A stretch of DNA of 64,000 bases. It comes from Basidiobolus meristosporus CBS 931.73 (lineage: Eukaryota > Fungi > Basidiobolomycota). Positions 4,566 to 64,000 of this stretch are shown here, one piece after another (position 1 is the stretch's first letter; each line of letters opens with the position of its first letter). The notes under the pieces were generated by a model. That model was given only the letters and a program-made list of their open reading frames with translations. It was not told the origin of the DNA and made no database searches. The stretch spans positions 62,001 to 126,000 of the forward strand of contig MCFE01000152.1 in the NCBI GenBank assembly GCA_002104905.1, given 5' to 3'. The translations under genes were made by a program, and so were the position numbers.

Positions 4566-4903
4566 TGTAAGAAACTTGTAATTCCACTTAAATTATCACC
4601 TAACTTAGTCACATAGATCATTATCTTCAAATCCTAGTGAATTCTGGCCAAATCCCTTGTTGGAAGTTACTTAGGGTTAGGGTAATATCAGGTACCCAGA
4701 ACATGAAAATAAGATTGGTTGTCCAACAGCCCTAAGCTTTACACACATGCTCTTGGGACCTTCCTAAGTCTATTCTACATGTTTGCAATGCCAAGATCAT
4801 GTAAAAGTATAAATACTACTTTCACATTCAATAAATCATTGAGTCAAAACCACATAATATACTTGTCCTCCCAATCACCTGCAATATCTCCTAAACTTTT
4901 ACA
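4566..4903 (+). repeat. Copia 3' LTR (~338 bp, TGTAA...TTACA)
   Basis: Follows the PPT, has TG...CA inverted termini, and homologous copies recur across the window. Confidence 0.85.
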
Positions 4904-5292
4904 ACCAGAAGTACTTTGGGTAGCAGATACTAATTAACATCTTGCTAACTCTTTCAAATTTTGGTGGTATCTCTAAGGGCTCATTCAGCTTGAGATGCCC
5001 CATGTATAACTTGGGCATTAGTGTAGGGATATTGTTGAAAATTAAATGCATTGCTCCCAGTCAAAAGCTTTTGCTTCAATAGACACCTGCTAGTTTAGAT
5101 ATCTCAGATTTCTGATCAGTGCATATTGCAGCCAATGGCTTAAAGCTTACCAACTTTGCTGCAATTGCATGCTGACTTCTGTACATTCCCTCTGTGTGAA
5201 TATGATCTTCTTAGTGTTGGTGTCTGGATTTTAATAATGTGTGTGAGTTATGGAGTAAATTCCCTGTATCTTGCACATTCAGCAGTAATACC

Positions 5293-12061: not shown

Positions 12062-15000
12062 TGTTGTGCATCAACATTTAAAACTTTGCCAATTTTACTC
12101 CATTTGAAAATCTAGTACCCTAACTGATTTTCCCTAACCCAAACATAACAAATCCCAGTTACAGTTTATTTGATCCCACCTCAGAATCTATTTTTAGCTA
12201 TCACACCTGATCTATTTTCAAATGGTCATCACGTTATCAACCTATCTGCCAAGCCTTCCCAGGTGATCAGTCATCTGAGATCTATCCAACCACTGTGCAG
12301 TTGCCAAGACATCAGTTGATTGATGATGTAATTTTCATTTATCTTATGCACCTATGAACACCCAAATTGATTTCAATCAATCCAGTCCCTTGGCGCTTAC
12401 TAATTCAACTTGATCAGAAAAGTATAAATAAAGTGTACTGAGCCTTTTGGTTTAGTGTGTATCTCAACAAAATTAAGATTCTGTCTCAGCAAAAATAAGA
12501 ATCCAACAATTCCGTTCTAGTTTCTATCCAAGCCTAGTATATCTAGCACTCCAAAGAACACCAAGCCTAGCCTGCCTAGCAAACAAATATCATTGCCTTT
12601 ATAGCCAACCCAGCTATATCCAAGACCAATATTAGATCAGAATCTTTCCGCTAATATTTCCGCCACTCTCTGACAATTCTAAGATTCTGCACTTAATTGT
12701 CCCTTTGGTTCAGTTAAACCATTCAAGAGTTTTATTACACTTTCTCTTGGATACAACATTTTTTTTGTTGAATTCCATTACATTCAGCCAATTAGAAGAT
12801 GTCCTCAGCAGCAAGCAATCTAAACCTTTCCATGTTGGAAGAAGCCAGAAGAAATCAGGAAGAACTTACTGAACAGCTTGAAAACATCATGCTTGAAAGA
12901 AATACCATGATGATTGAGCACTCAAAACTTGCCAAAACAAGATCTGATAATCACTGTAGAGATGAACTCCTTGAAGTTATATCCGGTTACCAAGATGAAA
13001 TTGGAATAATTAAGGAAGCACTGGAGAATATTGCCATAGTAATTGACAGCATTGAAAATCCACCAAGCCTTGCTCTGCATCAGCCACCAAGAAGTCATGC
13101 CTTTGAATCCTCCAGATCTACATCTCCTTCTAGACCTGCCCCGGTGGTTGTCCCAAGATCCTTGCCTGTTTATGCTGAAGGCACCAATGCCATCAAGAAT
13201 CCAACTGAGTTTCTTTACAAGTTTAGTCACGTCTTAGCTGCACACCAGCTAGACCCTGACACCAACTGGGCTAGACTTCTGCCTCTCTGTCTCACAATGC
13301 AAGATGCTGACTGGGTTGAAGTGAACATTCCTTCCAATAGTACGTGGAAAATTGCCCAAAACCTCTTTTGCAGCCATTTTAAAGATCCTCTCAAGAAAGC
13401 ACATCTGAACTGCGACTTATGGAAAACTAAAATGCAAAAAGGTGAATCTGTGCAACACTTCTGTGATAGATTCCAAAGACAAGTGAGATTAGCTGGAGTT
13501 AGTGATGATAATCCATCGCTTACTGCTCATTTTCTTTCAAACTTTTCACACCAGCTACAGAGCAATATTGCCATTGTCAAAGCATGCAACCCTGCATGTA
13601 CCTATGACCAGATCTCAGAGATATGTACACTGGCAATCACCTTGACTGCAGCTATTAGCCAGACTTCAGGCAGCTCAACCCAATATCCCACAACAGCCAG
13701 AAAAGAGACCAGTCATGTGACCAAGAAGCAGTCAACCGCTACTAAGCACTGTGAGCTTCATGGAAAATGCTATCATTCTACCAGTGAATGCAAAGGCATC
13801 ACCAAGCAGTCAAACAAGTCAGGAAACACCGCAGAAAAGCAGCAAAACACCAAAACTGATAATCCATATGCTGATGACAAGTGCTTTAAATGTGGAAATA
13901 GGGGACATAGATCACCTGCCTGTCCTGAGAAGAACTCCACACCATCAGCCAAAATTACCCAGATCCTTGATGATCATTCAGCCAATGATACAATGGGGTA
14001 TGAAGAAGTATATGAAGAACTTACAGTTCAAGATTATCACAACCTCTTTGAGTTTCCGGCTAAAATTGCAACTGTCCAAGAAAAGAAGCAACCAATCACA
14101 CAGCTCAAAGCCATAGAAGTGCCACTCACCCTCAATGGCCAATCATACGTTGCACTACTGGATACTGGATCATCCAACTCTATTGTATCACCCAATGTAG
14201 TCAGAGAACTCAATTTGGAGATAGAAAAACGACCAGGAAAAATCATTCTTGCAGCTAAGGATCTCTCAGCCCCAAGAATTGGCATTACCAACCCAATCAA
14301 CATACATTGTGGCTCAGTAACCATAATCCATCAGATGGAAGTGATTGACATACCAGATGGACCTCAGGTAGTCATTGGTCTGGACACCTTCACCAAACTT
14401 GGCTTTCACATAGGCAGACTACTGGTTTCCTATCCAGGAATCACTAAATCTCAGCCACTCATAATGGATCAAATCCCAGAGATTATCTCATCCCAACCGG
14501 AAGAAGAAGAGTTAACCCCAGCTTTTCAAGAATATTCTCAATCAGTCAAATTAGATATTCAGCCAGCCATATAGAGAAATCAGGCCATTCCAAGGAACAG
14601 CTTCTGCACCATCCCAGAATCCATTGTTACACTAGAGACCCCACCTGGTGAGTCAACATGGAGGAGGCAATACCCAATTCTGCATTCATGTCAACACTTA
14701 GTTGATGAGATAGTCCAAAAATGGGCTGACAATGGAATTATCACTCAAGCCCCTGTCAACACAACATTCAACAGCCCTTTGACGCTTGCACCAAAGAAAG
14801 ATGCTGATGGAAATCTAACCCTGAAGAGACCCTGTTTGGACCCCAGACCTCTGAACAAGCTTCTCCAAGATGACAAGTTTCCAATTCCAAGAATCCAAGA
14901 TATCTTTTCCGCACTATCAGGAGCAATAGTATTCTCCAAGTTGGACTTGAAGGATGCATATCACCGATTCCAGATCCATCCTGATCATCAGCATAAGACT

Positions 15001-17980
15001 GCCTTTACTTGGAATAATATGCAATGGATGTTTCAGGGAGCTCCCTTTGGCCTAAAGACACTTACCAGCAAGTTTCAGAGAGTCATGACTATAATACTCA
15101 AGAATGCACCATATGCATTGGTATTTGTTGATGATGTCATCATATTCTCCACTAACCGTGATGATCATGCAACCCATGTCACTGATGTAATCAACAGACT
15201 GACAACTGCTGGACTGATTCTCAATGCTGAAAAGTGCAGTTTTGCCCACCTCAAAATCAATCTACTTGGATTTATAGTGACACCAGCTGGCCACCAATTA
15301 GATCCTTTCAAACTGGTCAATATCCCAGAATGGCCAAAACCCACTAGCGCCAAGCAACTTCAACATTATCTTGGAGTATTCATCTATTTTAGGGAACACA
15401 TACCACTCATGTCCTCATTGAGTGCCCCATTAGATGCATTACGCCATAGCCCTGATCTCACCTCAGCCTGGAACAAGACTCATGACCAAGCCTTTGAGTC
15501 ACTCTGCCAACTGCTTCCACAAGCACCCACCTTTTCCTACCCAGACTTTACTAAGCCCTTTGTTGTTGCTACAGATGCATCTAATGTTGGGTTAGGGGCA
15601 GTCCTCTATCAAGATGAAGACCAAAATCCGCCTCACTGGATCTCTTTCCAAGCCAGGTCCCTACAACCTGCTGAGAGAAACTACTCTGCTACCAAGAAGG
15701 AGCTACTTGCCATAGTCTTTGCCTTGAAGAAGTTTCATCAGTATCTATGGGGTAATCCTTTTACCTTGTACACTGACCATCAAGCCCTTGTCTATATCCA
15801 CACTCAGAAGACTCTGACTCCAATGCTTACCAACTGGCTTGATACTCTACTTGATTATGAATATACAGTTATTCATTGCCCAGGAATTCTCAACATCCTT
15901 CCTGACCACCTGTCAAGACTTTTTCCAACTTCACCTTGGGAGGGACATGTGATTACTGATGTAATCAGTAAACTCTCTACAACTTCCAAAATAATTCCTC
16001 AACTGGATTCAGCAACTTAGAAAATCCCACCTGAAGAACAAAGGAAAACATTGATACAGAGGAGTCATTTACTTGGCCACTTTGGAGCTGACACACTTAT
16101 GAAGAAGCTACACTCTGATGGATATCACTGGCCAAATATCAAAGTTGACTGCTTAGAATTTGTCAAGTTGTGCAGAGAATGTCAACTTTACAATATCAGC
16201 CGCCATGGATTTCACCCTTTGAGCCCCATCCATGCAAGCCTTCCTATGGATCATATTGCAATTGATCTGGCTGGACCTTTCACCACTAGTGATGATGGTA
16301 ATCACTACCTCTTTGTAATTGTGGATGTCTGCACACGTTTTGTCTTCCTCAAAGCCATCCCAGACAAGTATGCGGCCACTATTGCACAAGAACTATTCAA
16401 GCTCTTCTGCCTTTTTGGATTCCCTAAGGTCATTTAATCGGATAATGGAACAGAATTTGTGAATCACGTGATCAAAGCCCTTTGCCAGAATAGCGCCATT
16501 GATCATTGTCTGATCACTCCATATCATCCCAAAGCTAATGGACTGGCTGAAAGACATGTTCAGACCTCAGTGAACATCATCAGGAAATCTATCAAAGGTA
16601 TCAAGAAGAATTGGGACAAGTACATTCCGACTGTACAGTATGCTATCAACACCAAAATTGCCACTCTACATGGATCAACCCCATTTTCCTTGATGTTTGG
16701 AAGAAGATACAACCACTTTGGAGACTACCAGAATACAGAGTTAGCAAGTTTGAATACAGATAAGCTAAAGAACCGGCTTGAGTACCTTACCAACATTGTC
16801 TACCCTGCTATCAGTGCCAGAAGTAAGGCCTCTCAGCAAAAGATGACTTCAACATACGCCTCAAGACACAGGAACAGCAGCTTCCCAGATGGGTCATATG
16901 TCATGACACTAGATCCAATCCGGCAATCTAAGCTTGACCTCAAGTATGAAGGACCATTCAAGGTTGTCAGACGCACTACTGGAGGATCTTATGTACTTCA
17001 AGATAACACTGGAGCACTGCTACCCAAGAACTTTCCACCTTCCTCACTCAAACTTATTTCTCAAGACCCAGTAACTTTGGAATCCTATGAAGTTGAAGCT
17101 ATTTTGGACCATGATGGAGAAGAACCAAATTGCCTTTATTTAGTCAAGTGGAAAGGCTATGATGCCAAACACAACACCTGGGAACCTTACACCAACTTTG
17201 ATGATGTTGCCATTATCAATCAGTATTGGAGCCGCAGAGGAACCCAGAAGGTATCAAAAAACTCCTCTTCCAGAAGGAAGTGATGTTGTGCATCAACATT
17301 TAAAACTTTGCCAATTTTACTCCGTTTGAAAATCTAGTACCCTAACTGATTTTCCCTAACCCAAACAAAACAAATCCCAGTTACAGTTTATTTGATCCCA
17401 CCTCAGAATCTATTTTTAGCTATCACACCTGATCTATTTTCAAATGGTCATCACGTTATCAACCTATCTGCCAAGCCTTCCCAGGTGATCAGTCATCTGA
17501 GATCTATCCAACCACTATGCAGTTGCCAAGACATCAGTTGATTGGTGATGTAATTTTCATTTATCTTATGCACCTATGAACACCCAAATTGATTTCAATC
17601 AATCCAGTCCCTTGGCGCTTACTAATTCAACTTGATCAGAAAAGTATAAATAAAGTGTACTGAACCTTTTGGTTTAGTGTGTATCTCAACAAAATTAAGA
17701 TTCTGTCTCAGCAAAAATAAGAATCCAACAATTCCGTTCTAGTTTCTATCCAAGCCTAGTATATCTAGCACTCCAAAGAACACCAAGCCTAGCCTGCCTA
17801 GCAAACAAATATCATTGCCTTTATAGCCAACCCAGCTATATCCAAGACCAATATTAGATCAGAATCTTTCTGCTAATATTTCCGCCACTCTCTGACAATT
17901 CTAAGATTCTGCACTTAATTGTCCCTTTGGTTCAGTTAAACCATTCAAGAGTTTTATTACACTTTCTCTTGGATACAACA
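12062..17980 (+). mobile_element. Full-length, recently inserted Ty3/gypsy chromovirus
   Basis: 697-bp LTRs (12062-12758, 17284-17980; TGTTG...CAACA) with 6 differences counted by eye, TSD ATACT, and PPT AGAAGGAAG. Confidence 0.97.
12799..17283 (+). pseudogene. Chromovirus single-frame gag-pol (CCHC, PR, RT, RH, INT, chromodomain) with three in-frame stops
   Basis: ORFs 12799, 14779, 16051 and 16459 share one frame, with stops at 14572, 16018 and 16435. Motifs: CFKCGNRGHRSPAC, LLDTGS, FVDD, ATDAS, HIAIDLAGP, SDNGTEF and YEVEAILDH...YLVKWKGY...TWEP. Confidence 0.95.
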
Positions 17981-23329: not shown

Positions 23330-25037
23330 TGCAATTGCTTTGAATTGCTCACATTTGTAATGATCCCAACGATCCTTTTTTTTTGCAATCCAAATTGAGC
23401 CATTGCAAATCAGTGATCATCAAATTTTGGATATAAGTAATATCAAGGTCGTCTCACATTTGAGACAGAACCCCTATAAATAAGCACCCTGCATATATAT
23501 ACATCATCTGTAATACCAGTGCAGCTATTGGATCTGTTTTGCACCTACACAATTGCTTGCATGCTAGCTATGACACCTTGTCCAATCACTAGGATCAGGG
23601 ATTTACTTGCTCAATGGGCAAAATGGGATATTTGATGGTGAATCAGGTAGCTTTTTCAGTAGTCAATGAGCCAATTGGGGGCTGCCAGCTTCAGGATACT
23701 TCTGGACCAGTTAACCACTGAGATACTGTCCAATTGGAGTGAGGGTAACCAAAATGGTAAGTATCAGTGTAGTTTATAGTGTGATACACATTTATTTCCA
23801 TTTACATTAAAGAAACATATCCAAATACCGGATTTTACCTGCCATTATAGCGGTATCCAATTGCGCACGTGATGCAAACATTACAAGTTGGCGCAATCAT
23901 CCGTGCCAACCTCATTGTGTCAGATTGTGCCATAGTGTGCAAGATTGTCCCGCATAGTGCGAAATTGTCCAAGAATGATCCTGCCTTCTGGTAGCTATAA
24001 TATTGCACCCAATTGTTCTTTACAACCACGGATTGCGCCATGCACCCTGGCATGGTACAATGGAACAAGTCTAGTATATTGAAAATGTTTGTGCTTGATT
24101 GATACTGGGTGCGGTATTTCAAAACTTCACAGTATTTGTTGGACTGTGTAAGCTTCTTCAGATGGTGCATAACTGGAATATATCTGGAGTGTGAACAATG
24201 TTTTCCTCCAATAGTGGTAGATTCCTGACAAGTTGGACACCTTGCAACAGTGGCATTTTCTGATGTAAATGCCATGCAACTGCTAATACATGCTGTCATC
24301 AGGACAGTGTCTGGGTCATATGTTACAAGCTGTAAGATAGTTGTCCTCTTGTATCATGAACATGGTAAGTTGCATCCTGGAATGATTTTGGCAAGAGTTA
24401 GTAGTAAATTCTCAAAGCCCCATTACTGATATTTGTGGAACCATACAACTTCTCTTGCCAATATATCACACCATTCACCAGTAGATGGATTACTGGGCTC
24501 ACTTGGCTTCATTAAGTATGCTTAGCATGTCTTTTCTACCGGTGTCATCTCATTGCATAAAAGGGGCTTGCTAGACTCATGTAGGGTACTGTTTTTAGGG
24601 GGGATAGGCTCACAATCCATCAGTGAGCTTTCTTCTTCAGAGCTCTCACTTTGCATGCCATATTAAAAAGGCTGAGGTGAGCATTGTAATAGAGGTTGTG
24701 GCACCACATACACACATATATGTATTGCTGTTTCTCCTTTGGTTTGACCCACTTTCATATATATGCTGCCAAAGAATAATTCCAGGAAATTGTGCCTTTA
24801 CATTAAAGAAAGGTGTATCCACAGTGGATCTTGTGTCTTCTAAGTTTGAGCTTTATGTGGAATACCCATGTCAGTACTGGCTATGCAAATGAATATGGGT
24901 GATTCTACAGTTGAGTGTATGTTTAGTGCAAGGGGAGGTAGAAAAATGAAATGTAATTTGGCAAATTGGTCTGATAGCATTGCACATAAGATACATATTC
25001 TTGGCAGCTGAATATGTCTGGCAAGTGTCTTTTATGC

Positions 25038-25380
25038 TGTGAGAGTCTTGGAGATATTGGAAGTGATTGGGAGGACAAGTAGATTATATGGTTTTCACTT
25101 AATGCTTTATTGAATGTAAAAGTAGTATTTATACTTTTACATGGTCTTAGCATTGCAAACATGTAGAATAGGTTAAGGACAAACCCAAGAACATGTGTGC
25201 AAAGTTTGGGGCTGTTTGGACAACTTTGAGAATTTTCATGTTCTGGGTATTGGTTATTTTGGTGAGAATATTTTAAGTAAATCCCAACAAGGAATTTGGT
25301 CAATATTCTCTAGGATTTTAAGGTAATGATCTAAGTGACTAAGTTAGGTGAATACTTAGGTGGAATTACAAATTCTTACA
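25038..25380 (-). repeat. Copia 3' LTR, second copy
   Basis: Reverse-complement homolog of 4566-4903, preceded on the minus strand by PPT GAGTGGAAG. Confidence 0.85.
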
Positions 25381-25394
25381 ACACTTCCACTCAG

Positions 25395-32175: not shown

Positions 32176-32327
32176 ATATCTCATATGTTCTGGGTACCTG
32201 GTATTTTGGTGAAAATATTCTAAGTAAACCCCAACAAGGAACTTGGTCAGTATTCTCTAGGATTTGAAGGTAATGATCTAAGTGACTAAGTTAGGTGAAT
32301 ATTTAGGTGGAATTACAAAATTTTACA
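32176..32327 (-). repeat. Truncated copia LTR
   Basis: Reverse-complement match to the 5' half of 4566-4903. Confidence 0.8.
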
Positions 32328-32638
32328 ACATTTTAATGCCTTCCAGATATTCCTTACTGTTTTGCTTCTGAACATTGCAATACTGATTGCTAAGACATAT
32401 ACAGTTGGAGGCACCTTGTTCTTTCTTCTGGTGCTACAAGACTTCTTCTCCTATGCCTTTAACAAGTCATTCTACTACTATAACAATATACCTGATGCCT
32501 TTTTCCTGTGGGATTTTCTTCATCTTCACCTTGCCGACTGGGTAGCCCAATCATTCAAACTTTTCAATAGAGGGAAGAATTCCAGTGATGGCAATAGGGA
32601 GCATTCCAGAGAGTAACAGCTTGGGGTTCATATTTCTT

Positions 32639-33371: not shown

Positions 33372-33713
33372 TGCAAATTTTGTTATCACCCCTAAATACT
33401 CACCCAACTTTGTCCCTCAGATCATTGTCTACAAATCTTAGGGAAATCTGCCCAAATTCATTGTTGGGGTTTTCTTGTCAATACTTTATGCTCTGGGTAC
33501 CTGATGTTTTGGTGAAAATATTGTAAGTTATCCAAGCAGCCCCCAGCACTGTACACATGCTCTTGGGACCTTACTAAACATATTCAATGTGATTGTTCTG
33601 CCAAAACCATGTGAAAGGAAAAATATTACTTTTACATTCAATAAACCATTAAGTGAAAGCCACATAATCTACTTGTACTCCTAATCACTTCTAATATCTC
33701 CAAAAGTCTTAAA
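33372..33713 (+). repeat. Old copia solo LTR
   Basis: Homologous to 4566-4903 (e.g. CACATGCTCTTGGGACC, CACATAATCTACTTGT). Confidence 0.75.
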
Positions 33714-36700
33714 ACACAAAGCATATTCTCAATGTTTACCCTGCGAGGGCCATACAGCAGAAGATGTATGAAGATTGGTAAGCTTATCAGGTCTCAGACA
33801 ATTAGATCTCAATGCCAGAATAACATGGGGCAATAATGGTTCATAGAACCAATTCCAAATTTGTCTAGGTGCAAATATGGGGGAAATTGTTTAAGAGTGA
33901 GGAATGATCGTAGTGCGTAACAAAGAATGATTTACACCTCTTGCATTGGATAAAAATCAAGATCAGACCCAACGTATAAGATAACGATTAGCTACGAAAC
34001 CTTGTCGTTATGGATGACTTGGTGCTCCACTGATCATTTGCAACCTAAATCCCAATACTTTGTAACATAGTGATGCGAGACTAATTGATTGAGGTGTAGG
34101 TTGCAGCCTAGCTCACGTGAGTACGAGATGTATCAGAGTGAATACTCGTAAGTCAGCCTATCCGGGGGCGACTAGTCAAAAAAGAGGCCCCATATCGGGG
34201 CAAGTTTGTATATAGTTGTTCTGAAGCATTGCAGTGAGCGTGACCTAGATATGGGAAAGGAATTTTCAGCATTCCAAATACTTCCTGATCTGAATAACCA
34301 AGCTGTGTATCCAAAATAGTCCATCCAGACACCATAGCACTAACCCATACTACTGATGATAGTGCCTAACTGGTACGGATGAGGGTAGTGGCATACATCA
34401 AGAAGCAAACCAGTTGACTGGCCATGGCCTGATACGCACGCATTGGATCAGTTTAATCTGTTAGATCAATGTGAATCAAATTCCTACCTAAATGGCGGGA
34501 TATTCAAGATAGACATTATTCGGAGCTCTGTTTTGACTAGCAGATCAGGCTTCGAAGGCACTGGGGGTTGATTTGGTACTGGGGCTTGACCCTTGTTTTT
34601 ATGGATTGATCCTACCGCCAAGGTACAATCCAGCCCTTACCATTTCTGAGGATATGTAGGTAATAGCCAGTTCAGATGATAGGATAGGATCTATGGTGTG
34701 CGGTGTGTGGTGTGGTAGATCGTACGAGGGTGATTCACTTTAGTGTCATCTTCCAACTCCTTATTGCACTGGACCAGATCTCTGACGAGTGGGGCCACAA
34801 CAATAGATCAGCCAATCATCTCCCCCAACTGCCGACACCGTGAATGAACTTTAAATGCCAAACAAATTGGACCGAAGGGTTTCATTGTGGGATCTGTTTG
34901 ACATAGTAAGTTGGGTTATATATAAACCAGCCTATGGGCAAGCGATGGAACAAGCACAACAAATGGCTTTGCATAACGAAAACCTTGTACTTGTGCCCAC
35001 TAATATCCAGCCCATCTCAGTCAGACGTTTGGAACTGGATCGACAGATTCCAGCGATTGTCCTAAAGCGCCGCAATGCCATTGCAGTTTCACCGCCTGAC
35101 TCACTGGCGCCTCACTCATGGCGGATCCATTCTCCATACTGAAACTAAGTGGACTGAGAGACCTGACCTGAAAATCACCACGCCTTAGCAAAATAGAGAA
35201 AATTCCTTCGAAGCAACATAGATGACCCAGTGTATCGTAAATAGGAGATCTCTCCCCACACTGACGAGACAATAAACATACCAAATACGAGTTGATATTT
35301 GGCCAACTAACTGTTCTACTCGCTTCCAAATATGGGCTCCTTAATCGGGTTCTCACCAACACCCTAGGCCGGTGATTTCCAGCTATTACCTTTATACAGA
35401 TTCAGATTCTTTGTGCCGGGCAGGGAATAATAGATTTCAGCCTCTGGAGTCTATGTCCGCCTTTAGGCCAACCCAGCTCCAGGTAATGGTTAATGTATAC
35501 AGGCTCCGGAGCACAGCGATCGTTCTGATATATATGTAACCTGCATGCCACGGTTTACTCCGATATCAGCCAAGGTCTAGGATGCTATGGGAACCCGCCC
35601 TGACGGGCACTGTAGTCATGGCTATTGATTCTTGAGGCTGTCACCAATATATATTTGGAAGGATAGAGTTCAGACCAATCAGCCTGCTCCTAGCTGAGCT
35701 ATTCTTCGATCCCAACTGTGCACGTAGGAGCTAAATCCGGCCTCTGAAGAGCTTGGATTCTGTGCGTTCAGGAGTACCACTCTGCGTCATTTCATAGGGA
35801 AGTGTGGTTGGCAATCCCGAAATAGGGCTGAACTATCGTATGGTAACGCTCGAATCTCTGTAAACTTCAGCCAATGCTTCAAGAATATGAAGGGGATAAA
35901 CATCACGAATTATGGGTTTATTTAGATTCCTAAACAACAGAAACGGTGCTACATGACCAATAATTGCTGCCTATAGGACGTCAGCTCCATCGGATTTGAT
36001 TATCTTGAAACCAGTTTCAAGATCTAGTAAGTTGTAGATCATGTCCACCTCACGAATATCTAAGAATAATCCGCTTGGGCACGGGCGAAGGACACATGCA
36101 GCCATTGAACAGTCGGCTCCATGCACTTGACGCTGTTCGCCTACTAGTGCCTTAGTGCATAGCAGTAAGTGCAGCTTTTGGGGTTTTTGGCGGAGAGTTG
36201 GCGGAGAGGCGTTCGTCTGATTTCGGGATTAGAGAAACCCCTTTCCTCCCCTCAATGTAACCCTATAATATATAGCCTATTTTCCCCTCGTGACACATTC
36301 GATTTATCAAGCGTTCACAGATCGCACAAACTGCACCTCGCATCTCTCCTGAGCTTTCTTTGGCATCCAGAACCAGTACTAGTATCAACGGGACATGGTC
36401 TTCGAGATGGGAATAACTGGATCAATTGTATTGGTGAGGTTTATCATCAACAGAACAGAACCCACCATGCATGCAGCTCATTATTACCTTAACGATCAAT
36501 ATGATTCCAAACCTATTTCGTCACACCCAGCGTAGATGTGGCAGGAGTAGGCTGCTATTTCGATCGTTGGTCACTAACTGTATTCCGAAAATGGTGTTTA
36601 CAGTAGTCCCAGAGTTCCTGGGGTCGCCAATAACCTTCGACTCACCAATACAATGTGGCCCAATTGAGAGATTTGCATTATGAAAAAAATGAGTCAGGCC

Positions 36701-37024: not shown

Positions 37025-37669
37025 ATGTCTATTCCTACGGAGGGAGAGTTTTTCTTCGTACCTGAAGGCTTTGTACCTATCCTGATAGTCGAATCGTTAA
37101 CCTCGGTAATAGAATACAACTACCCGACCAATGCAGTCCCTTCGACCCAGCCCAGATTCCCCGGTCCGGTTTATTCCGCCTCGATCCACACTCAGCCGAC
37201 TGGGAATGTACCTCCTCGCGATGTCAAGGCCCTGCATCCAGGAGCCTCAAATCCAGCCAAGACGAAGGGCCCGAAGCTCAAAAAGGCGCCACGACCTACC
37301 AATGCATTTATCATTTTCCGCAGGGAGAACCATGGACGCATATTCCAGCAGAACCCACATCTATCCAACAATGATGTTTCCAAGGCGCTGGGGAAAGAAT
37401 GGAAGGAACTGCCGGAACACAAGAAAGATATCTACCGTGAAAAGGCGAAAAACCTTCAATTAGAGTATCAGCACAAGTATCCCGACTACAGATTTACCCC
37501 TCCAGCACATCGCCAAAAACGCGCGAAAACGCCCAAGTTAGTCAGCGATTGCATGGAGCACACTTACACCAAGCCCAGCCATCCAGCCCCAGACACTACA
37601 ATGCACACACGTCCTTCACAAAGTCCTTTTCATATATTGTATATTCCGAAGGTGGGCAGCTCCAGCTAG
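37025..37669 (+). CDS. Sequence-specific HMG-box transcription factor (SOX/TCF/MATA_HMG class)
   Basis: PRPTNAFIIFRRENH...NPHLSNNDVSKALGKEWKEL...YREKA.....HKYPDYRFTP. First ATG at 37025; the open frame extends back to 36827. Confidence 0.88.
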   Translation: MSIPTEGEFFFVPEGFVPILIVESLTSVIEYNYPTNAVPSTQPRFPGPVYSASIHTQPTGNVPPRDVKALHPGASNPAKTKGPKLKKAPRPTNAFIIFRRENHGRIFQQNPHLSNNDVSKALGKEWKELPEHKKDIYREKAKNLQLEYQHKYPDYRFTPPAHRQKRAKTPKLVSDCMEHTYTKPSHPAPDTTMHTRPSQSPFHILYIPKVGSSS

Positions 37670-39379
37670 ATGTGGCCATACACAAATTTGCAGGTCTTGC
37701 ACCAAGAACACTCTATATACACACATGAATTTCGGGCTTCGTCTACAAGTACTATGACATTCCATCAGGGTGAAGGTGCACCCATGGAATATTCCTGATC
37801 AGAAGAGCAATCATTCGCATTGAATGGCCTCTAGATGCTCAATTTGCAGGATCCCATTGACGGGGGTGTTGGTATATTTACGAATGATCTCGCCTAGAGC
37901 GCACATTCACTCTGAATTGGATGTAAATAAACCTGACAAACCTCATATGATATCCATCTCCAAACAAAGCAAGGCTCTTACGTCTTCTCAGCTTCCAACA
38001 GATTCCTCTTGCTACACGCCACCAGTCCTTGCTGATAAGCCTGGCTTCAGCAAAAGCCATTCGACATCACCAAATCTATTTCGGCCCAATATGAACGTGG
38101 CCCACCCTATGTTAACATGTATGGAAGGCCGCTCAAAGATCTTGCCATCAGTAGATAATCTGGCACATTTAGCCGTTGCTAAATATATTTTGTCTAGTTT
38201 GGTCTGAACCAACCCACCTGACAGATCCACTTGTTGATCTTCAACGACGATGGAATCACGATACTCCTGCCTAGTTGGATACCCGGCTTATGAACACGGG
38301 TTCCAAGTATTTTGGTACAACCATGGTGCGAGATCGATGCAACTATTAATGACCTGCGGCTTATTGTTTCGGATAGGTTTGAACAATGAGAAGTAAATAT
38401 TAGTATAGCGTTTATTTCTCATATAGTATATACTGATCGCCTAGTATATTTACCACACAAATATTCTTAACAGCCCTCCCGATATGCCAGAAGCTCAAGC
38501 CACTGCTCAGATACCATTCTACTGCAATATTTGGGTTTTGTTGGTGCATAGTTATTTTCCACCAATCACATCTAGTCCCTTTTTCATCCCAACTAGGCAT
38601 GATTGGCTATATCCTCTATCTGATCTAAATGATAAAAATTGCCCTCTGGTCATTAGTATATTATTTTTAAGATTCTACATATATACTAGACTCAATTAGA
38701 TTTGTGGATGTAAGTGGAAATACACCATAGGTATATCTAATAGAGCTTTGAATAGCTGAATACAGAACTGGTCCACATTATAAATCAGAAATTGCCACCT
38801 ATTCATGTTGCAAATTTGTAATTCAACCAGACTATTCTATTAACTTTGTCACTTAAAACATAATTAACCAACCTTAGGGTTTCTTCCCAAGCTTCTTGTC
38901 AAGTGTCACCTCAAATATTCTGCCAGGATGTCAGATACCCAGGGCTTGAAAAATTTCAATGCTGTCCAAAGTGTTGCAATACTTTAGGGGCTTTTTGAAG
39001 TAATTTGGAGAACTAGAAGACTTGTACAGTATTTGCTGCTTGTTACACCAAGTTCAAGGAAGGCATTTGTACAATTGAAAATGGTTAGACTGGTGCAAAA
39101 AGGCTGCTGCCAGCTGTGTGAAGCATTGGTTGCTATTGAGCAGATTTAAAATACCAATGCTTCCAAACCTTCCTCAACTAAAGAATTAGCTGATGTCCTA
39201 CAAGCCAAATTAGAAGTAACTAAATCCTATTTTATCAACAAGTTGAATGGAATCTTGACTATGTGAATTCTTTGGTGTAAGCCAAATTTCTACTACAGTC
39301 AATATATTTCTGAATTACTTCACTAAACACTATTTATTTATTCAATACAGGCATGTATATATACCTTAGTAGGGTATAA

Positions 39380-39563
39380 ACAACAAGTGTGCAGAGTGTG
39401 AGGCTGTTTGGATAACCTTGATCTTTCCTATTTTCTGGGTAACTGATGTTTAGGTGAAGCTATTCCATGTAAATCCTGACAAGTAACATGGCCAGAATTT
39501 TCTAAGATTTGTAGACTGTGATCCAAGTAACCAAGTTTGGTGGATATTTAGGTACAATTCACA
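39380..39563 (-). repeat. Degenerate partial copia LTR
   Basis: Weak reverse-complement similarity to the 5' half of the 340-bp LTR; boundaries are approximate. Confidence 0.55.
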
Positions 39564-39761
39564 ATAACAAGTTCACCCATATTGATGATGTTGCAAGATT
39601 CTATGGAAAATTGATTGTGATCTTGGAAACTAGAGTTCCTTAATGCTCACCAGTTACTTTACCAAGTTCAAAATGCCAAGTTTCTTATTGATTTCACAAG
39701 AACTTTATTGAGCATAACATAGGAATGTTCCAAAAAAGGTCCCTGGAGGTGGTATACATGA

Positions 39762-40104
39762 TGTAAAAATTCGTATTTCCACCTAAATATTCATCTAACT
39801 TAGTCACTTAGATCATTACCTTCATATCCTAGAGAATACTGACCAAACTCCTTGTTGGGATTTACAAAGAATATTTTCACCAAAATAACAGGTACCCAGA
39901 ACATGAAAATTCTCAGAGTTGTCCAAACAGCCCCAAACTTTGCACACATGTTCTTGAGACCTTCCTTAACCTATTCTACATGTTTTTTATGCCAAGATCA
40001 TGTAAAAGTAGAAATACTACTTTTACATTTAATAAATCATTAAGTGAAAATCACATAATCTACTTGTTCTCCCAACCACTTCCAATATCTCCAAGACTCT
40101 TACA
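39762..40104 (+). repeat. Copia solo LTR (343 bp)
   Basis: TGTAAA...CTTACA, clearly homologous to 4566-4903 and 25038-25380. Confidence 0.88.
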
Positions 40105-40146
40105 ACAATACAGTGCATACAGGTCTTTAGATGGGTTCAAAGATAT

Positions 40147-40361
40147 TGTAGATTTTGTAATTACACCTAGATACTCACATAACTTGGTTACTAGGATCAT
40201 AGTTCAAAAATCTGAGAGAATTTTGGCCAAGTTTCTTATTGGGATATACTTAGAATATTCCCACTAAAGTAATAGGTACACAGAACATAAGAAATCTCAA
40301 GGTTATTCAAGCAACCACTAACTTTGCACACATATTCTTATGACCTTCCTAAGCATATTCT
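40147..40361 (+). repeat. Truncated copia LTR in tandem with 39762-40104
   Basis: Homologous to the first ~215 bp of the LTR. Confidence 0.7.
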
Positions 40362-41182
40362 AACTCCCAGGAACAAGCAAAAAGATATATATATATAGGT
40401 CAGGTAAATACTATATATGTAGGAGTAGGCTAAGCATTTAAAACAATAGATGCATGTAGCAACGTAAACTAGTCGCTGATAAACTACTTATGGAACATTA
40501 GCAATTTCCTTGTGTCCTAGTTTCACCTGCAGCTTTAGCTTTGTGAAAGTATCCTCTACCAGGCTTATTCTATGATATTATTCATACAAATGCGCCACCA
40601 ATGGTTTCAACAATGAAAACCGAGACCCATTGTTGCATCCGGTGGCTGCCGCAGCATCACTAGAACAGTCCTCCATATCACGTGCTAGTTCCACGAAAAA
40701 CCATAACGGCTCATGCCGATGAGAAGCCAATAGATTTGGATTACATAATCCAAGCCAGTGTATATGCATCGCGTTCTTACCACTATCTATAGCCAATCAT
40801 TTCAATCAAAATCATGACAATCCAAACTAATACCACGAGCGGCATTCATGGAATATGAAACCAACATTTTCAGCATGCCAGTGAGCTAGGATTCACAATC
40901 ATCGGCAGAGCCAATCACTCCCGTAAATTCCGGCGACGGTTCACCTTTTTTAACTTCTGGATTCGAGCCTAGTGCGTTGAATCACGCGTCGATAAACCAT
41001 ACATCACCAGAATGATGGTTAGGTGGACACCGGTGAGCGTAAGATGGAAAAAATCCCACATATACTTTATTTTGCTGTACGGTTGGAGGAGAATGACGGT
41101 GATGAAAGTATGCTGCTAAAACTAGCTAGACTTCTATACATAATATACAGAGCCAGAGAAAGACAGTAGACAAGAAAAATGC

Positions 41183-41620
41183 TTATATAGTGTAAGTTTC
41201 TCCACGAAGTCTTCTCGCCAAGTAAATATCTTTGGTTTGAATGGTAACACGCTTAGCATGGATCGCGGCTAGATTGGTGTCCTCAAACAGGCCCACTAGG
41301 TAAGCCTCCGTTGCCTCCTGAAGTGCAGCAATGGCAGTACCTTGAAAGCGAAGATCACTCTTGAACTCGCTCGCAATTTCACGGACTAGTCTTTGAAAGG
41401 GAAGTTTGTTGATAAGGAGCTCGGTGGTTTTTTGATAACGTCTGATTTCTCGAAGGGCAACCGTTCCAGGTCTATACCGGTGGGGTTTTTTCACCCCGTA
41501 TGTGCGTCTGCTTGCTGTAACGGCATTCAGGGTGTTCTTACGTGCGATCTTGGGGATCAGCTGCTTTCTTGGCACTTTACCGCCGGTTGACTTTCGCGCG
41601 GTTTGTTTGGTTCTGGCCAT
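41183..41620 (-). CDS. Divergent histone H3 variant (145 aa), intronless
   Basis: [21 protein letters not shown]...[22 protein letters not shown]...[11 protein letters not shown]...[18 protein letters not shown] at 41620. Confidence 0.95.
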
Positions 41621-43282
41621 AATAAACTGGTAGCTTTGTGTGTGTGTGCACGTGTGTCTGCTAAATAAATAAAATGAAGTGCAATCTGTTGGAAAGAGAA
41701 AGTTAAACACCTGCCGATTTTTTTGATCGTAATATATATGCTTTTGACAAATGGGGGTTGTAGCCAATGATCATGCCTCTCGATATAGTTGCCTTTAATT
41801 CGAGTTTAATAAAGGGTCATGAGTGAATCAGATGCACTTTAACCAATATAAAACTGGTTTCTCTAAAATTGATGCATTAGCATTTGTATTGTCACTATGG
41901 ATCGAGGAATGTTCTATGGAACACCTAATTCCACTCTAAAGAGCTCTTTATGGCCAATATGCATGTCACTTGAGGGAAGTGACTTGCCTAGGCTCAGCAA
42001 TGGCAATGAAGCTGATTCAGCTTGCAAATACTTCTGAATAGAAGGTTGGTTTCCCAAGCTGAATCATGTGATAGGAATTTCATTCACAAACACAGCAGAT
42101 GCCAATGGGGATAAATGGAAGTAGTAACCCCATTGATTCTTGGATTAAAGCTCAGAGCTTTGGCACAGTAAATGCAATAGTCTCTTATAATTGGATAGTA
42201 TACTACTTGACAAAGCATTACCAATTTACTTATAGGCATTTCAATATCCAATAATATTAGGGAGATTCCATACCAGTACTGTGTTAGGGAGGTGCATGAT
42301 TGCCTACACTCCAAAGTATGGGGTTTCAGTACTGATGTGGAAGATAGTGATTTAGATCATCAGATAGTACCACAAGCCCTTACACCAAATTTGAAACTCA
42401 CTGATAGTGCAGTTAAAGCAGCATGGTGCATTTGTAAATGGAATACAAGGGTACCAGAGTATTTGTATTTTTGAAGGTGTTGGTGTCTTTCTTTTGCTTG
42501 CAGAGCCTAGAGCATACCTTAGCATCCTCCGAATATCCTTCTGCCCGCAGGTAATTCATACCTAGTGGGCTTCATTTGGGTAGGTGATCATAAGCGATGC
42601 GCTCATGCAATTTCAAAATATATCTCCATCATCACAAGCTATCAATGACTCAGCTTCCGAGTTGGGCTTCCGTAAGGGATGAGGGATGGTGAAGATTCTT
42701 CTGGAATGATCAGAATTCACGATTTGCCTGATGGCAATTTTGGGGTGGGATATGATCGATTTTGGGAGCAATATCCAATAATATCGGCAAAGCGGATCGA
42801 GAATAGATGCGGTTGATGGCAGACATTTGCACAAAAAGCCCTGGTCAACCAAGTGTTTCAACTTAAAAAATCAATAGGATTGTCCCATCTTCTAGGTTCA
42901 TCCACATTTTGATAGGCAGTTGCTGTGGCACATCCATTCTGCTAGTATTGATACTTGTCTACGCCATTCATATCTGTAGAAGGTAAGGTGGATTCACACA
43001 GTCTTTCCTTGCCTACCTTGAGTTTCGTGACACGATTTCCAAGCCGTAGTTACTGGCACTTCCCACCATTCAGTTTTTCAAAACGGCCCGCTTCTCCTTT
43101 CATCTTGACAACTGTATTATTGAGTAGTAGTGTTTCTAATTCGCGCTCTTTAAATACCAGAACATCATCTACCGTATCCACGTAGCCACACTTCAGTCGG
43201 AGCCATTTCCATTGTATTGCTCGCACTTGCGCGTCCTTATTGAGCAGCCCGTTTTCCAGACCATTCTATAATTTTAATACTA

Positions 43283-46200
43283 ATGGATCCATCCGATACC
43301 ATCCTCGACAAAAGCCCTCCACAGTATGGTACTGCAAGTTTTCTTCAATCTTTCCTGGTTGTCCAAACTAACCTATCTTGATGTCTTCCCTTACAGAAGC
43401 GTCTCCCTCTCCCTCAGAGCAGTATGATGCTATCCAGCCTCTTGTAAATTCGCCACTTCAAGTGGGGGAGACTCGATATCTACTTGACTTCAAGTGGTAC
43501 GAGGAATGGCAGGAATATGCCACAGAGAAGTCTCTGGTTTCACCTGGACCTATCGACAACACCTCTCTCTTTAACGACAGCTCATTCACTACGTTGAAGG
43601 AATGGTTGAGCGTCGATATTGACATAATCCCTGTTCCCGAGGATGCCTGGGAGAAGTTGGTGCTTTGGTAAGGGTTCTTTTATATCGGGTGGCAAGCAGA
43701 AGCAGTCTGGGACTGCACCCTTCTGTCTCTACCTTCACAAGCCATATTAATCCTTTGACTCCGAAGGTATGGTTCTCTCACACCCGAGATTATCCGCCCG
43801 GTCATCAAAGGTTCTGCACAAGAGGCTATCATTGAGGTTTACCCTTGGGAGGTCAGCTTAGTGCGTATACTTCCACCATCTTCTTCTCTGCTCAGCAAAA
43901 AGGCACTAAAGTTACAAATAAGTAAAGGGTGCACGATTTCGGATCTCCGATTCAAGGTGATTGACAAACTGGAGATTGAGGGGGAAATGAAGCTCTGGAA
44001 GTTCGGGGAGGATGTGCCAGAAACCTCCTTTATCAAAGCTGATCAGCTGGAGAGTGCCCAGCCTATCGAGGCCAAATTTGACAGCAAAACCATCCAAGAA
44101 TTTGGACTTCACTTGTACGACGCAATAGGCGTAGAGGTGAAGGAGCATGGGAAGTGGCCCACCGGATACGTACCTCAACCTGTGGTTGCCTCTTCCAATG
44201 GCCTGCCAAACAGCACCCCCAACTATACCATCTCCTCATATTCGCCTAGAGCCACTATCCAGCCCTCCAAACCCCGTGGTGTCACCGGGTTATCCAACCT
44301 GGGCAACACTTGTTTCATGAACTCTGCTCTCCAATGCTTGAGCAACACCAAGGAGCTTAAAGAATACTTTGTCTCTGGAATGTACAAGCATGAGCTCAAC
44401 AAGACAAATCCTCTGGGGATGAATGGGGAGGTTGCCGAAGCGTTCGGAAGTTTGGTTGAGAGGTTGTGGAGCGGGATGAACAGTTCTATTGCGCCCAGAG
44501 AGTTCAAATTGACCATCGGCCGATTTGCCCCTTCGTTCATGGGCTACCAGCAGCACGACTCGCAGGAGTTCATTGCGTTCTTATTAGATGGTTTACATGA
44601 GGACCTGAACCGAATCTACGACAAACCATACATAGAGAAGAAGGATTCCGATGGTCGACCCGATGCCATTGTCGCCGAGGAACACTGGCAAGTTCACAAA
44701 TCTCGTAACGACAGTGTCATCGTGGACATGTTTCAGGGCCAGTACAAGAGCACCTTGATCTGTCCTGAGTGTAACAAAGTCTCGGTCACCTTCGACCCCT
44801 TCATGTACTTAACTCTTCCCATCCCTGTCTCCAAAGAGTTAAAGCTTGAGGTCCATTTCGTCCCTCTCGACCCAGCCAAGCGCCCTCTCAAGCTCAATTT
44901 GAAGATGCCCCATGGAGGCACCCACAAGGCCATGAAGGAGAAGATAGGCTCCATGCTAAATGTTGCTCATGAGAATATTGTCACGTGCGAGGTCTATACT
45001 TCCCGCATCTACAAGGTCTTCGAGAATTCGGACAAATTGAACGAGATTGGTGTGAGTGACACGATTTATGCATATGAGCTCCCCGTAGCCTTCCCACCGA
45101 ATCGTGGCTCTGGGTGTGTCATTTTGTCAGTGCTGAACGCGTATTCCAAGCAAATCTCCACCTCCTCCTTCGGTGCCTCCCGTGCTATCCCCGACTTCTT
45201 CGGCGTGCCACTTCTTGTGGCCTTATCAGAAGACAAGATCTCAGAAGACGGCCTGGAGGAGGCTGTTCTGGAGCAGTTGGCGAGGTATACTACTGTCGAC
45301 TTGAGGTCTTTGACTCCAGCTGAGCTGACTTCACTCAAGCGTGAGGATACCACAAACGATGTTGAGATGGACGATGTGGAAACCAACCAACAGCGTATAG
45401 AGGAGATAAACGACGAGGAGCTTGTTACCAAGGAGGAGGATGTAGCGCCGTTGGAGGAGTCGGATTCGGAGACCCCGGTGAAAAAGTTCAAGAAGGCGGA
45501 TCCCAAGCTATTCGAGATGAAAATCAGCAGCCAAAGCTCAGGCCGCAGCATTCCCGCCAACTTCACCCTGTCCAATTTGATTAGCCTTAGCAAAAGGAGA
45601 CAAGATGTGGACGAGGCCAAAGAAGTCACCCAGCTTCCTTTCCTCAAACTTGGAGACACGATTGTCTGCGAATGGGAGCGTGAGGTCGCGAACCATGTTT
45701 TCGGTGACTCTAGAAATGAGATGGATACCGATGATGTTAGAGGCGGGCTTTGGAGCACGTTCGAGGTCTTTGTGGACCCCAACGAGAAGCCGGTCGAAAA
45801 GTCCCAAGAAAAGAAGGATATCACGCTTGATGACTGTTTAGAGGAGTTTGTCAAGGAAGAGCAACTAGGGGAGGAGGATCCTTGGTATTGTCCCAACTGT
45901 AAGAAGCACCAGCAAGCCTTGAAGAAGTTTGATCTGTGGCGGTTGCCGGACTTTTTGGTGGTCCATTTGAAGCGGTTTTCACACACGCGTAGTTGGCGTA
46001 ACAAAATCGACGTGGTTGTGGATTTCCCCATCAACGATCTTGACCTGTCCTCTCGCGTGCTCGGGGAGAGGATTGATGAGAACGGCCTGATATACGACCT
46101 GTATGCCATCTCTAACCATTATGGCGGCTTGGGTGGTGGGCACTACACCGCATATGCATACAACTCCGAAGAGGAGCGGTGGTACAACTTCGACGATTCC

Positions 46201-63306: not shown

Positions 63307-63639
63307 TGTCAATTTCATAATTACACCTAAATATTCACTTGGTCACTTACATCATGGTCATCAAATCTTCGATAATCCTGCCCAAATTCCTTGTCGGGAT
63401 TTTGAATATTTTGACCAAAACATCAGGTACCTAGAACATGCAAAATTGTTAAGTTGTCCAAACAGCCCCAAACTTTGCACACATGTTCTTGGGACCTTCC
63501 TAAGCATATTCTACATGCTTATTTTTCCCAGACCACATAAAACTATAAATACTACTTCTACATTCAATAAATCATTAAGTGAAAACCACATAATCTACTT
63601 GTTCTCCCAATCACTTGCAATATCTCCAAAACTCTTACA
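63307..63639 (+). repeat. Copia solo LTR
   Basis: TGTCAA...CTTACA, homologous to 39762-40104. Confidence 0.8.
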
Positions 63640-64000
63640 ACAACATGTTGGTATGCTGGTGAATCAAGTATTGACCAAGGATCTATACTTCCTGTAGAAT
63701 CTCGTGAAATTAGCTATTAGGATGATTTTGGGAAGGCCACGGAAAGGCGTGCGCAGCATTTGGGGCTTTCGGGCGACTTGAAAATCCTCTCTTCCTTCAA
63801 TGTTTCCATAATCCTGAACAATCAGCACCAGGAACACGAACTGAATTCCAAGTCGAAGTTAGTGAAGAATTGGGAAACAGATCCTCCTCGACCATTTCGA
63901 AATCCAGATTATTCTCCAAGACATTGTTTACTGTTGAATGGCTGGCAGGTGCTAAACTAATCATTGGAAACCCATTAATTAATGGTACCCTTGAAAAGGC

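Follow-up and report, generated by a model that had tools for sequence, protein, structure and literature searches.

Our analysis of a 64,000-nucleotide stretch of contig MCFE01000152.1 of Basidiobolus meristosporus CBS 931.73 (hereafter, the window) identified a histone H3 gene, here called variant B, that probably encodes a functional, lineage-specific and non-centromeric H3 paralogue of Basidiobolus, as judged from its sequence and from comparison with its relatives. A preliminary description of the window, made from its letters, had already proposed an H3 variant that is not centromeric and whose K27–K36 segment is rewritten, and both the translation and the alignments support this proposal.

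The reading frame of variant B is uninterrupted from its ATG to its TAA (Table 1). The longer frame of 194 amino acids given by the open reading frame lister is simply an upstream run to a TTG, and variant B and its counterpart in Basidiobolus ranarum both start with ATG-GCC (M-A-R-T). The product matches the Pfam Histone family (PF00125, E = 4.4e-41, residues 10–139). It also matches the H3.2 and H3.3 chains of the PDB in a phmmer search (E ~2e-63, residues 1–141), which identifies it as a histone H3; the alignment contains one gap, seven residues long in the PDB chains, directly after ARK(27) of variant B. The exact protein is on record from the same contig (assembly GCA_002104905.1, strain CBS 931.73), and it is the sole member of its own 90% cluster. 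The gene was also described as intronless and solitary, which is borne out by the unbroken frame and, within ±8 kb, by the called genes, which include no partner H4. Variant A, the second Basidiobolus H3 variant described below, is intronless as well.

Table 1. Positions of the features discussed in the text (window coordinates unless another sequence is named)
Feature	Position	Strand	Details
H3 variant B CDS	41183..41620	(-)	145 aa + TAA, intronless; annotated gene on MCFE01000152.1; ATG at 41620, TAA at 41185-41183
Rewritten, lengthened K27-K36 linker	41495..41536	(-)	codons 29-42
TATA box, ATATATAT core	41730..41739	(-)	110-119 nt upstream of ATG
Inverted CCAAT box (ATTGGC, gene strand)	41763..41768	(-)	~145 nt upstream of ATG; weak, motif match alone
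Candidate polyadenylation signal AATAAA	41066..41071	(-)	~112 nt past stop
Coverage by public run X1 (2015)	41248..41689	.	two short contigs, 41248-41399 and 41373-41689
Copies of ~350-nt repeat	38813-40362, 4566-4905, 25035-25383, 32185-32331, 33391-33716, 63311-63643		
B. ranarum H3 5' end, unannotated	JASJQH010008862.1 (L004), 2-97	minus	first 32 codons, contig edge
Variant A	B. meristosporus ORX91269.1 (P0240); B. ranarum KAK9764741.1 (P0067)		

The translation and the alignments confirmed that K4, K9, S10, K14, K18, K23, K27, K36/K37, K56 and K79 are present in variant B, as the preliminary description had listed. Its statement that S28 is lost and that seven residues are inserted between K27 and K36 agrees with the asparagine found at position 28 and with the +7 seen in the alignments, and the substitutions R63N, P121T and Q125Y are likewise all present in the translation. 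Two further statements held in part. Residues 86–90 indeed read G-T-A-I-A, but a canonical H3 of Coemansia likewise has A90, and only S86G and S87T are unusual in this patch. Similarly, the C-terminus is altered, but the reported TYTI extension consists of the substitutions R134T and A135Y followed by no more than two additional residues.

We compared the residues of variant B with those of five canonical early-diverging fungal H3s; identity to canonical fungal H3 is 79–83%. Canonical proteins, such as those of Coemansia reversa (P0381), Piptocephalis (P0377) and Powellomyces (P0088), share with variant B the fold, residues 1–20 and K4/K9/K14/K18/K23/K27/K36/K56/K79, whereas variant B differs from them by 12 substitutions across the fold (among them R63N, Q76S, S86G, P121T, Q125Y and R134T) and by a rewritten segment 21–35 with +7 and +2 residues. 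The states specific to variant B are A24I, S28N, D77E, S87T, P121T and the C-terminal Y-T-I. Extension of the K27–K36 linker is common in fungal H3 (+7 in Kwoniella and +2 to +4 in Coemansia). The linker of variant B carries two arginines and a tyrosine directly before G34-V35-K36, with the tyrosine in place of G33, and reads S-R-R-T-Y-G-V-K when counted back from K36. A search with the tail only (residues 16–55) against 5.8 billion proteins returned no protein other than the query with the tail of variant B, and the next match (E = 9e-3) belongs to an unrelated, protist-like group of H3s. Replacement H3s of the H3.3 type are characterized by signature residues at positions 31 and 87–90, by expression outside the S phase and by a dedicated chaperone. 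At positions 87–90, variant B reads T-A-I-A versus the fungal S-A-I-G/A, and its position 31 falls inside the rewritten segment.

A search with the full-length protein returned thousands of H3s, among which a single one, a 144-aa 'histone H3.1' of B. ranarum, is specifically similar to variant B. The 90% cluster of this protein also contains B. meristosporus ORX91269.1, which is variant A. The preliminary description had called for an H3 phylogeny, and a maximum-likelihood tree of 23 H3s (the three Basidiobolus variants and 20 others) grouped variant B with the variant A proteins of B. meristosporus and B. ranarum in a Basidiobolus-only clade with 99/98 support. In addition to this monophyly, variants A and B have ten derived positions in common (A21I, T22P, G33Y, S57T, R63N/S, Q76S, S86G, A/S96T, Q125Y and R134T), and the basic pair and the tyrosine that replaces G33 are present in both. 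These states were judged to be derived by reference to other early-diverging fungal H3s, not to a canonical Basidiobolus H3, which was not found in our protein-cluster look-ups. In the tree, the terminal branch of variant B is short and the stem of variant A is long, which places variant B closer to the ancestral state than variant A.

Since the two variants reside at different loci, variant B is a paralogue, and not an orthologue, of variant A. The variant A locus is syntenic in both species and contains genes for a CDP-alcohol phosphatidyltransferase, ATP synthase subunit J, the H3 and a protein kinase. Variant A resembles variant B in being intronless and solitary, in having a mid-tail that is longer by 7–8 residues and in its position in the tree. 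However, it is only ~80% identical to variant B, has lost K23, G34 and V35 and carries Q19H and L20I, whereas variant B keeps K23 and G34-V35-K36 and has P121T and the C-terminal Y-T-I. Synonymous sites are saturated (dS) in all pairs, and therefore only dN is meaningful for the comparison of A with B, which gave a dN of 0.13 for the whole protein and 0.06 for the core. Even the two variant A genes, with a dN of 0.05 and 75% nucleotide identity, show saturated dS.

A survey of the literature found no paper describing H3 variants of Basidiobolus, neither A nor B. Zoopagomycota are said to possess H3 variants (PMC6703697, citing Talbert 2012), and no Basidiobolus-specific text could be traced behind this statement.

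Variant B lies at the border between the repeat-rich half of the window (1–40.4 kb) and its gene-dense, GC-richer half, ~50 kb from the contig end in contig coordinates. The genes called within ±8 kb encode an oxysterol-binding protein, a DUSP-UCH ubiquitin hydrolase, the H3 and a small protein with an HMG box. The hydrolase, a Ubp12-like ubiquitin-specific protease (USP), is arranged head-to-head with variant B, with the two start codons ~1.7 kb apart. The HMG-box gene (98 aa, ~37244–37537 on the plus strand) is located 3.6 kb downstream of variant B; by Pfam, its product is an Nhp6-like architectural protein of chromatin.

The hydrolase gene served as a synteny anchor between the two species. 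Its B. ranarum orthologue (P0241; 87% identical, partial) is located on the 4.4-kb contig JASJQH010008862.1, and the beginning of an H3 gene, absent from the annotation, lies at the far end of this contig, ~2.3 kb upstream of the hydrolase gene on the opposite strand, the remainder of the gene lying beyond the contig end. The 32 codons present include Q-L-I-P-K-[I/L]-A-R-K, as in variant B, versus H-I-I-P-P-N in variant A; this fragment is therefore the orthologue of variant B. The presence of a syntenic orthologue in B. ranarum shows that the A/B duplication is older than the split of B. meristosporus and B. ranarum, and the saturation of synonymous sites between the two species indicates that the variant B locus is old. 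We conclude that variant B has occupied its present locus, with its own promoter, since the two species separated. The suggestion that the gene may be a retro- or transposed copy was thus not supported, because the B. ranarum orthologue is found at the same place, head-to-head with the same USP gene and with its TATA box equally far from the ATG. The sequence also speaks against a processed pseudogene: no A-run follows the AATAAA, the TATA box is conserved, a syntenic orthologue exists and pN/pS, as described below, is 0.03.

Two other features of this locus were observed. A second DUSP-UCH paralogue (P0242) is present at another B. meristosporus locus and is 54% identical to the one adjacent to the H3 gene; compared with the 87% identity between the species, this value indicates that the duplication of the hydrolase is also old. 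Within the otherwise diverged H3–hydrolase intergenic DNA, a 135-nt block (window 42851–42985; 1877–2009 of the B. ranarum contig) is 75% identical between the two species. It ends in a splice-donor-like AG|GTAAG and may represent an unannotated 5' exon of the hydrolase gene. An Rfam search over 40300–43900, which includes this block, gave no match.

Evidence on selection came from public run X1 (2015), two contigs of which cover codons 1–124 of variant B and 69 nt upstream of the ATG with 91–97% identity to the window over the aligned stretches. The sequence of the window itself is absent from this run and the annotated proteome contains no near-identical paralogue; the contigs therefore most likely derive from a close relative or another strain. 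Among the 11 listed coding differences, ten are synonymous and one is nonsynonymous (R38K, a conservative change), which corresponds to a pN/pS of 0.033, given that the 124 covered codons contain 92 synonymous sites and 280 nonsynonymous ones. The binomial probability of observing at most one nonsynonymous change among 11 differences under neutrality is 8e-6. Even if four further differences near the contig ends, which are unlisted, were all nonsynonymous, pN/pS would still be 0.17. The only differences in the linker are a synonymous change in T35 and R38K, and variant A has a lysine at the position aligned to the latter. Variant B is thus under purifying selection in the B. meristosporus lineage. 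The preliminary description had named a dN/dS near 1 together with a lack of expression as the mark of a decaying pseudogene, and the low pN/pS excludes such decay in this lineage and points instead to a functional gene.

Within the genus, the tail is constrained to different degrees. The tail of the B. ranarum orthologue (M-A-R-T-T-Q-T-P-R-K-S-T-G-A-Q-E) carries K4T, A7P, G13A, K14Q and A15E, and its first 20 codons contain six nonsynonymous changes versus none in variant A. These changes, which fall among residues that hardly vary elsewhere and remove K4 and K14, suggest that either the function of the copy may be changing in B. ranarum or the copy may be in the course of being lost there.

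Run X1 is classed as RNA by guess and consists of contigs, and it therefore cannot prove transcription. Its upstream end, at -69, is ~40 nt past the TATA box, a distance compatible with the start of a transcript, but such contigs cannot define transcript ends. No X1 contig corresponds to the hydrolase exon in the stretch compared, which would be compatible with an RNA library and equally with a DNA library that is very incomplete.

In both species, the ATATATAT core of the TATA box lies at aligned positions ~110 nt before the start codon, whereas the sequence around it has diverged. A scan for bacterial-type promoters and terminators was disregarded because the host is a fungus. Direct reading of the DNA after the AATAAA of variant B revealed no poly(A) tract. 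Six GCCAAT motifs, all on the plus strand, occur in the 1.4 kb around the H3 gene (40726–42106), where ~1.3 would be expected; over the whole window the enrichment is marginal (59 versus 43 ± 7 expected). The 5' leader contains a (GT)n-like tract (41637–41652) that is 13 nt shorter in the close relative and is thus a length-variable microsatellite.

The stretch from 40363 to 43800, which contains the H3 gene, is unique within the window. The preliminary description had placed the gene near solo LTRs; the repeats closest to the gene belong to a dispersed element of ~350 nt, lie 0.8–2.4 kb downstream of variant B and at least 820 bp past its stop codon, and could not be confirmed as LTRs. This element is present in at least six copies in both orientations with 68–92% identity and may be a SINE, MITE or solo LTR; a stack of three partial copies follows just downstream of variant B. 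The sole clear LTR retrotransposon in the window (12062–17583) is apparently young: its 300-nt direct repeats, 5.2 kb apart and surrounding three long ORFs, are 99% identical.

Several other explanations of variant B were weighed against these data. It is conceivable, but in our judgement unlikely, that variant B is a redundant extra H3, functional and expressed but with tolerated substitutions, kept for dosage or for a particular expression window and without a special role in chromatin. Such a gene would retain every major modifiable lysine and the full fold, as variant B does; the length of the K27–K36 linker varies commonly in fungal H3, and purifying selection is compatible with any functional H3. 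However, the ten derived substitutions are common to two paralogues whose separation predates the divergence of the species. They affect G33, R63 and Q125, among others, which are normally invariant, and thus argue for a selected and distinct property. Roles of G33 and R63 are documented (PMC4973290, PMC13085070).

That variant B is a decaying or silent retrocopy, or a transposed pseudogene in a transposon-rich subtelomeric region, appears highly improbable. The gene is indeed solitary and intronless and adjoins the repeat-rich 1–40.4 kb with the ~350-nt repeats downstream, the sole run with matching sequence consists of contigs presumed by guess to be RNA, and K4 and K14 have been lost in B. 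ranarum. Nevertheless, the frame is intact, the differences from the close relative are almost entirely synonymous, and both the position and the TATA box have been conserved in a species with saturated synonymous sites; in addition, there is no poly(A) remnant, the surrounding DNA is unique within the window, and the core dN to variant A is as low as stated above. CenH3/CENP-A proteins, which like variant B are paralogues within the H3 family, have an unalignable N-terminal tail and a longer loop 1 and have lost Q68, F84 and T107. None of these defining features is found in variant B: its first 27 residues match canonical H3, its loop 1 is not extended, and it retains Q68, F84 and T107. The preliminary description had argued on similar grounds that the protein is not CENP-A. 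The idea that variant B is the centromeric H3 of Basidiobolus has next to no probability and was rejected by sequence; weak, sub-threshold Pfam matches to the CENP-S and CENP-T folds might seem to point to it, but any H3 gives such matches.

The closest characterized fungal parallel to variant B appears to be H3V-CTG of Candida albicans, which is also a lineage-restricted, non-centromeric variant present beside canonical H3, with tail changes at ~31–32 (PMC6703697). H3V-CTG differs from canonical H3 at three positions only (31, 32 and 80) and has been shown to function in the control of biofilms (PMC6703697), whereas variant B differs from canonical H3 at >25 positions, is of independent origin and is known from sequence. 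The H3 G34R/V/W oncohistones offer another comparison, because they also place a bulky side chain in the G33–G34 step beside an intact K36 (PMC4973290). Unlike these oncohistones, variant B is a germline-encoded natural variant with the change at G33 (to tyrosine), and its effect on fungal Set2 is a predicted one.

If variant B is indeed a functional paralogue, a mechanism can be proposed for its action. Given its complete and highly conserved fold, variant B should pair with H4 and enter nucleosomes, where it would replace canonical H3 in a subset of particles. In B. meristosporus, these nucleosomes would still be able to carry marks at K4, K9, K14, K18, K23 and K27. K36 is kept but may be shielded in cis from methylation by Set2/SETD2-type enzymes. 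In the SETD2–H3 structure, G33–G34 passes through a tunnel with room only for glycines, which have no side chain, and the small, uncharged residues 29–35 of H3 lie in a positively charged channel (PMC4973290); the tunnel limit explains how G34 oncohistones prevent the methylation of K36 in cis (PMC4973290). The predicted shielding follows from the Y-G of variant B at this glycine-only step and from the two arginines in the normally small and uncharged segment. The S28N substitution would remove the phospho-switch beside K27, and the K27–K36 spacing is 16 instead of 9 residues.

Changes in the core may also have consequences. H3R63 contributes to the DNA contacts by which RNAPII is obstructed at SHL(-1) (PMC13085070), and R63 is lost in both variants, which leads to the prediction of a weaker barrier: R63N would drop one DNA contact at SHL ±1, yielding a particle that is easier to unwrap and that obstructs RNAPII less. 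In animals, the 86–90 patch distinguishes H3 variants for chaperones (Table 3 of PMC3380720). S86G/S87T, located where helix 2 begins, and P121T/Q125Y, at the start of helix 3, may alter chaperone handling or the H3–H3' interface.

A broader scheme, which we consider distinctly unlikely, is that Basidiobolus possesses a private, co-adapted set of variant histones (the two H3 variants together with a divergent H4 and H2A) that would build an alternative nucleosome resistant to K36 methylation and with looser DNA near SHL 1, possibly for use in one life stage (zygospores, meristospores or capilliconidia) or in a compartment of the unusually large nuclei of Basidiobolus. If true, this set would parallel, in a fungus, the histone sets that animals and plants reserve for the germline.

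To our knowledge, most fungi are thought to carry only one non-centromeric H3, and natural fungal H3 variants are therefore rare and useful. Variant B should be annotated as an H3 variant and not as plain histone H3. The rewritten tail changes fast between species, as illustrated by the B. ranarum orthologue, whereas the core is constrained, and the two variants may provide a testable case of a tail that keeps a lysine yet would be insulated from its writer. The two old and selectively maintained Basidiobolus paralogues alter G33, R63 and Q125, residues that are normally treated as invariant and of which R63 contacts DNA at the main RNAPII barrier, and variants A and B thus represent natural experiments on positions known mainly from oncohistone and structural work.
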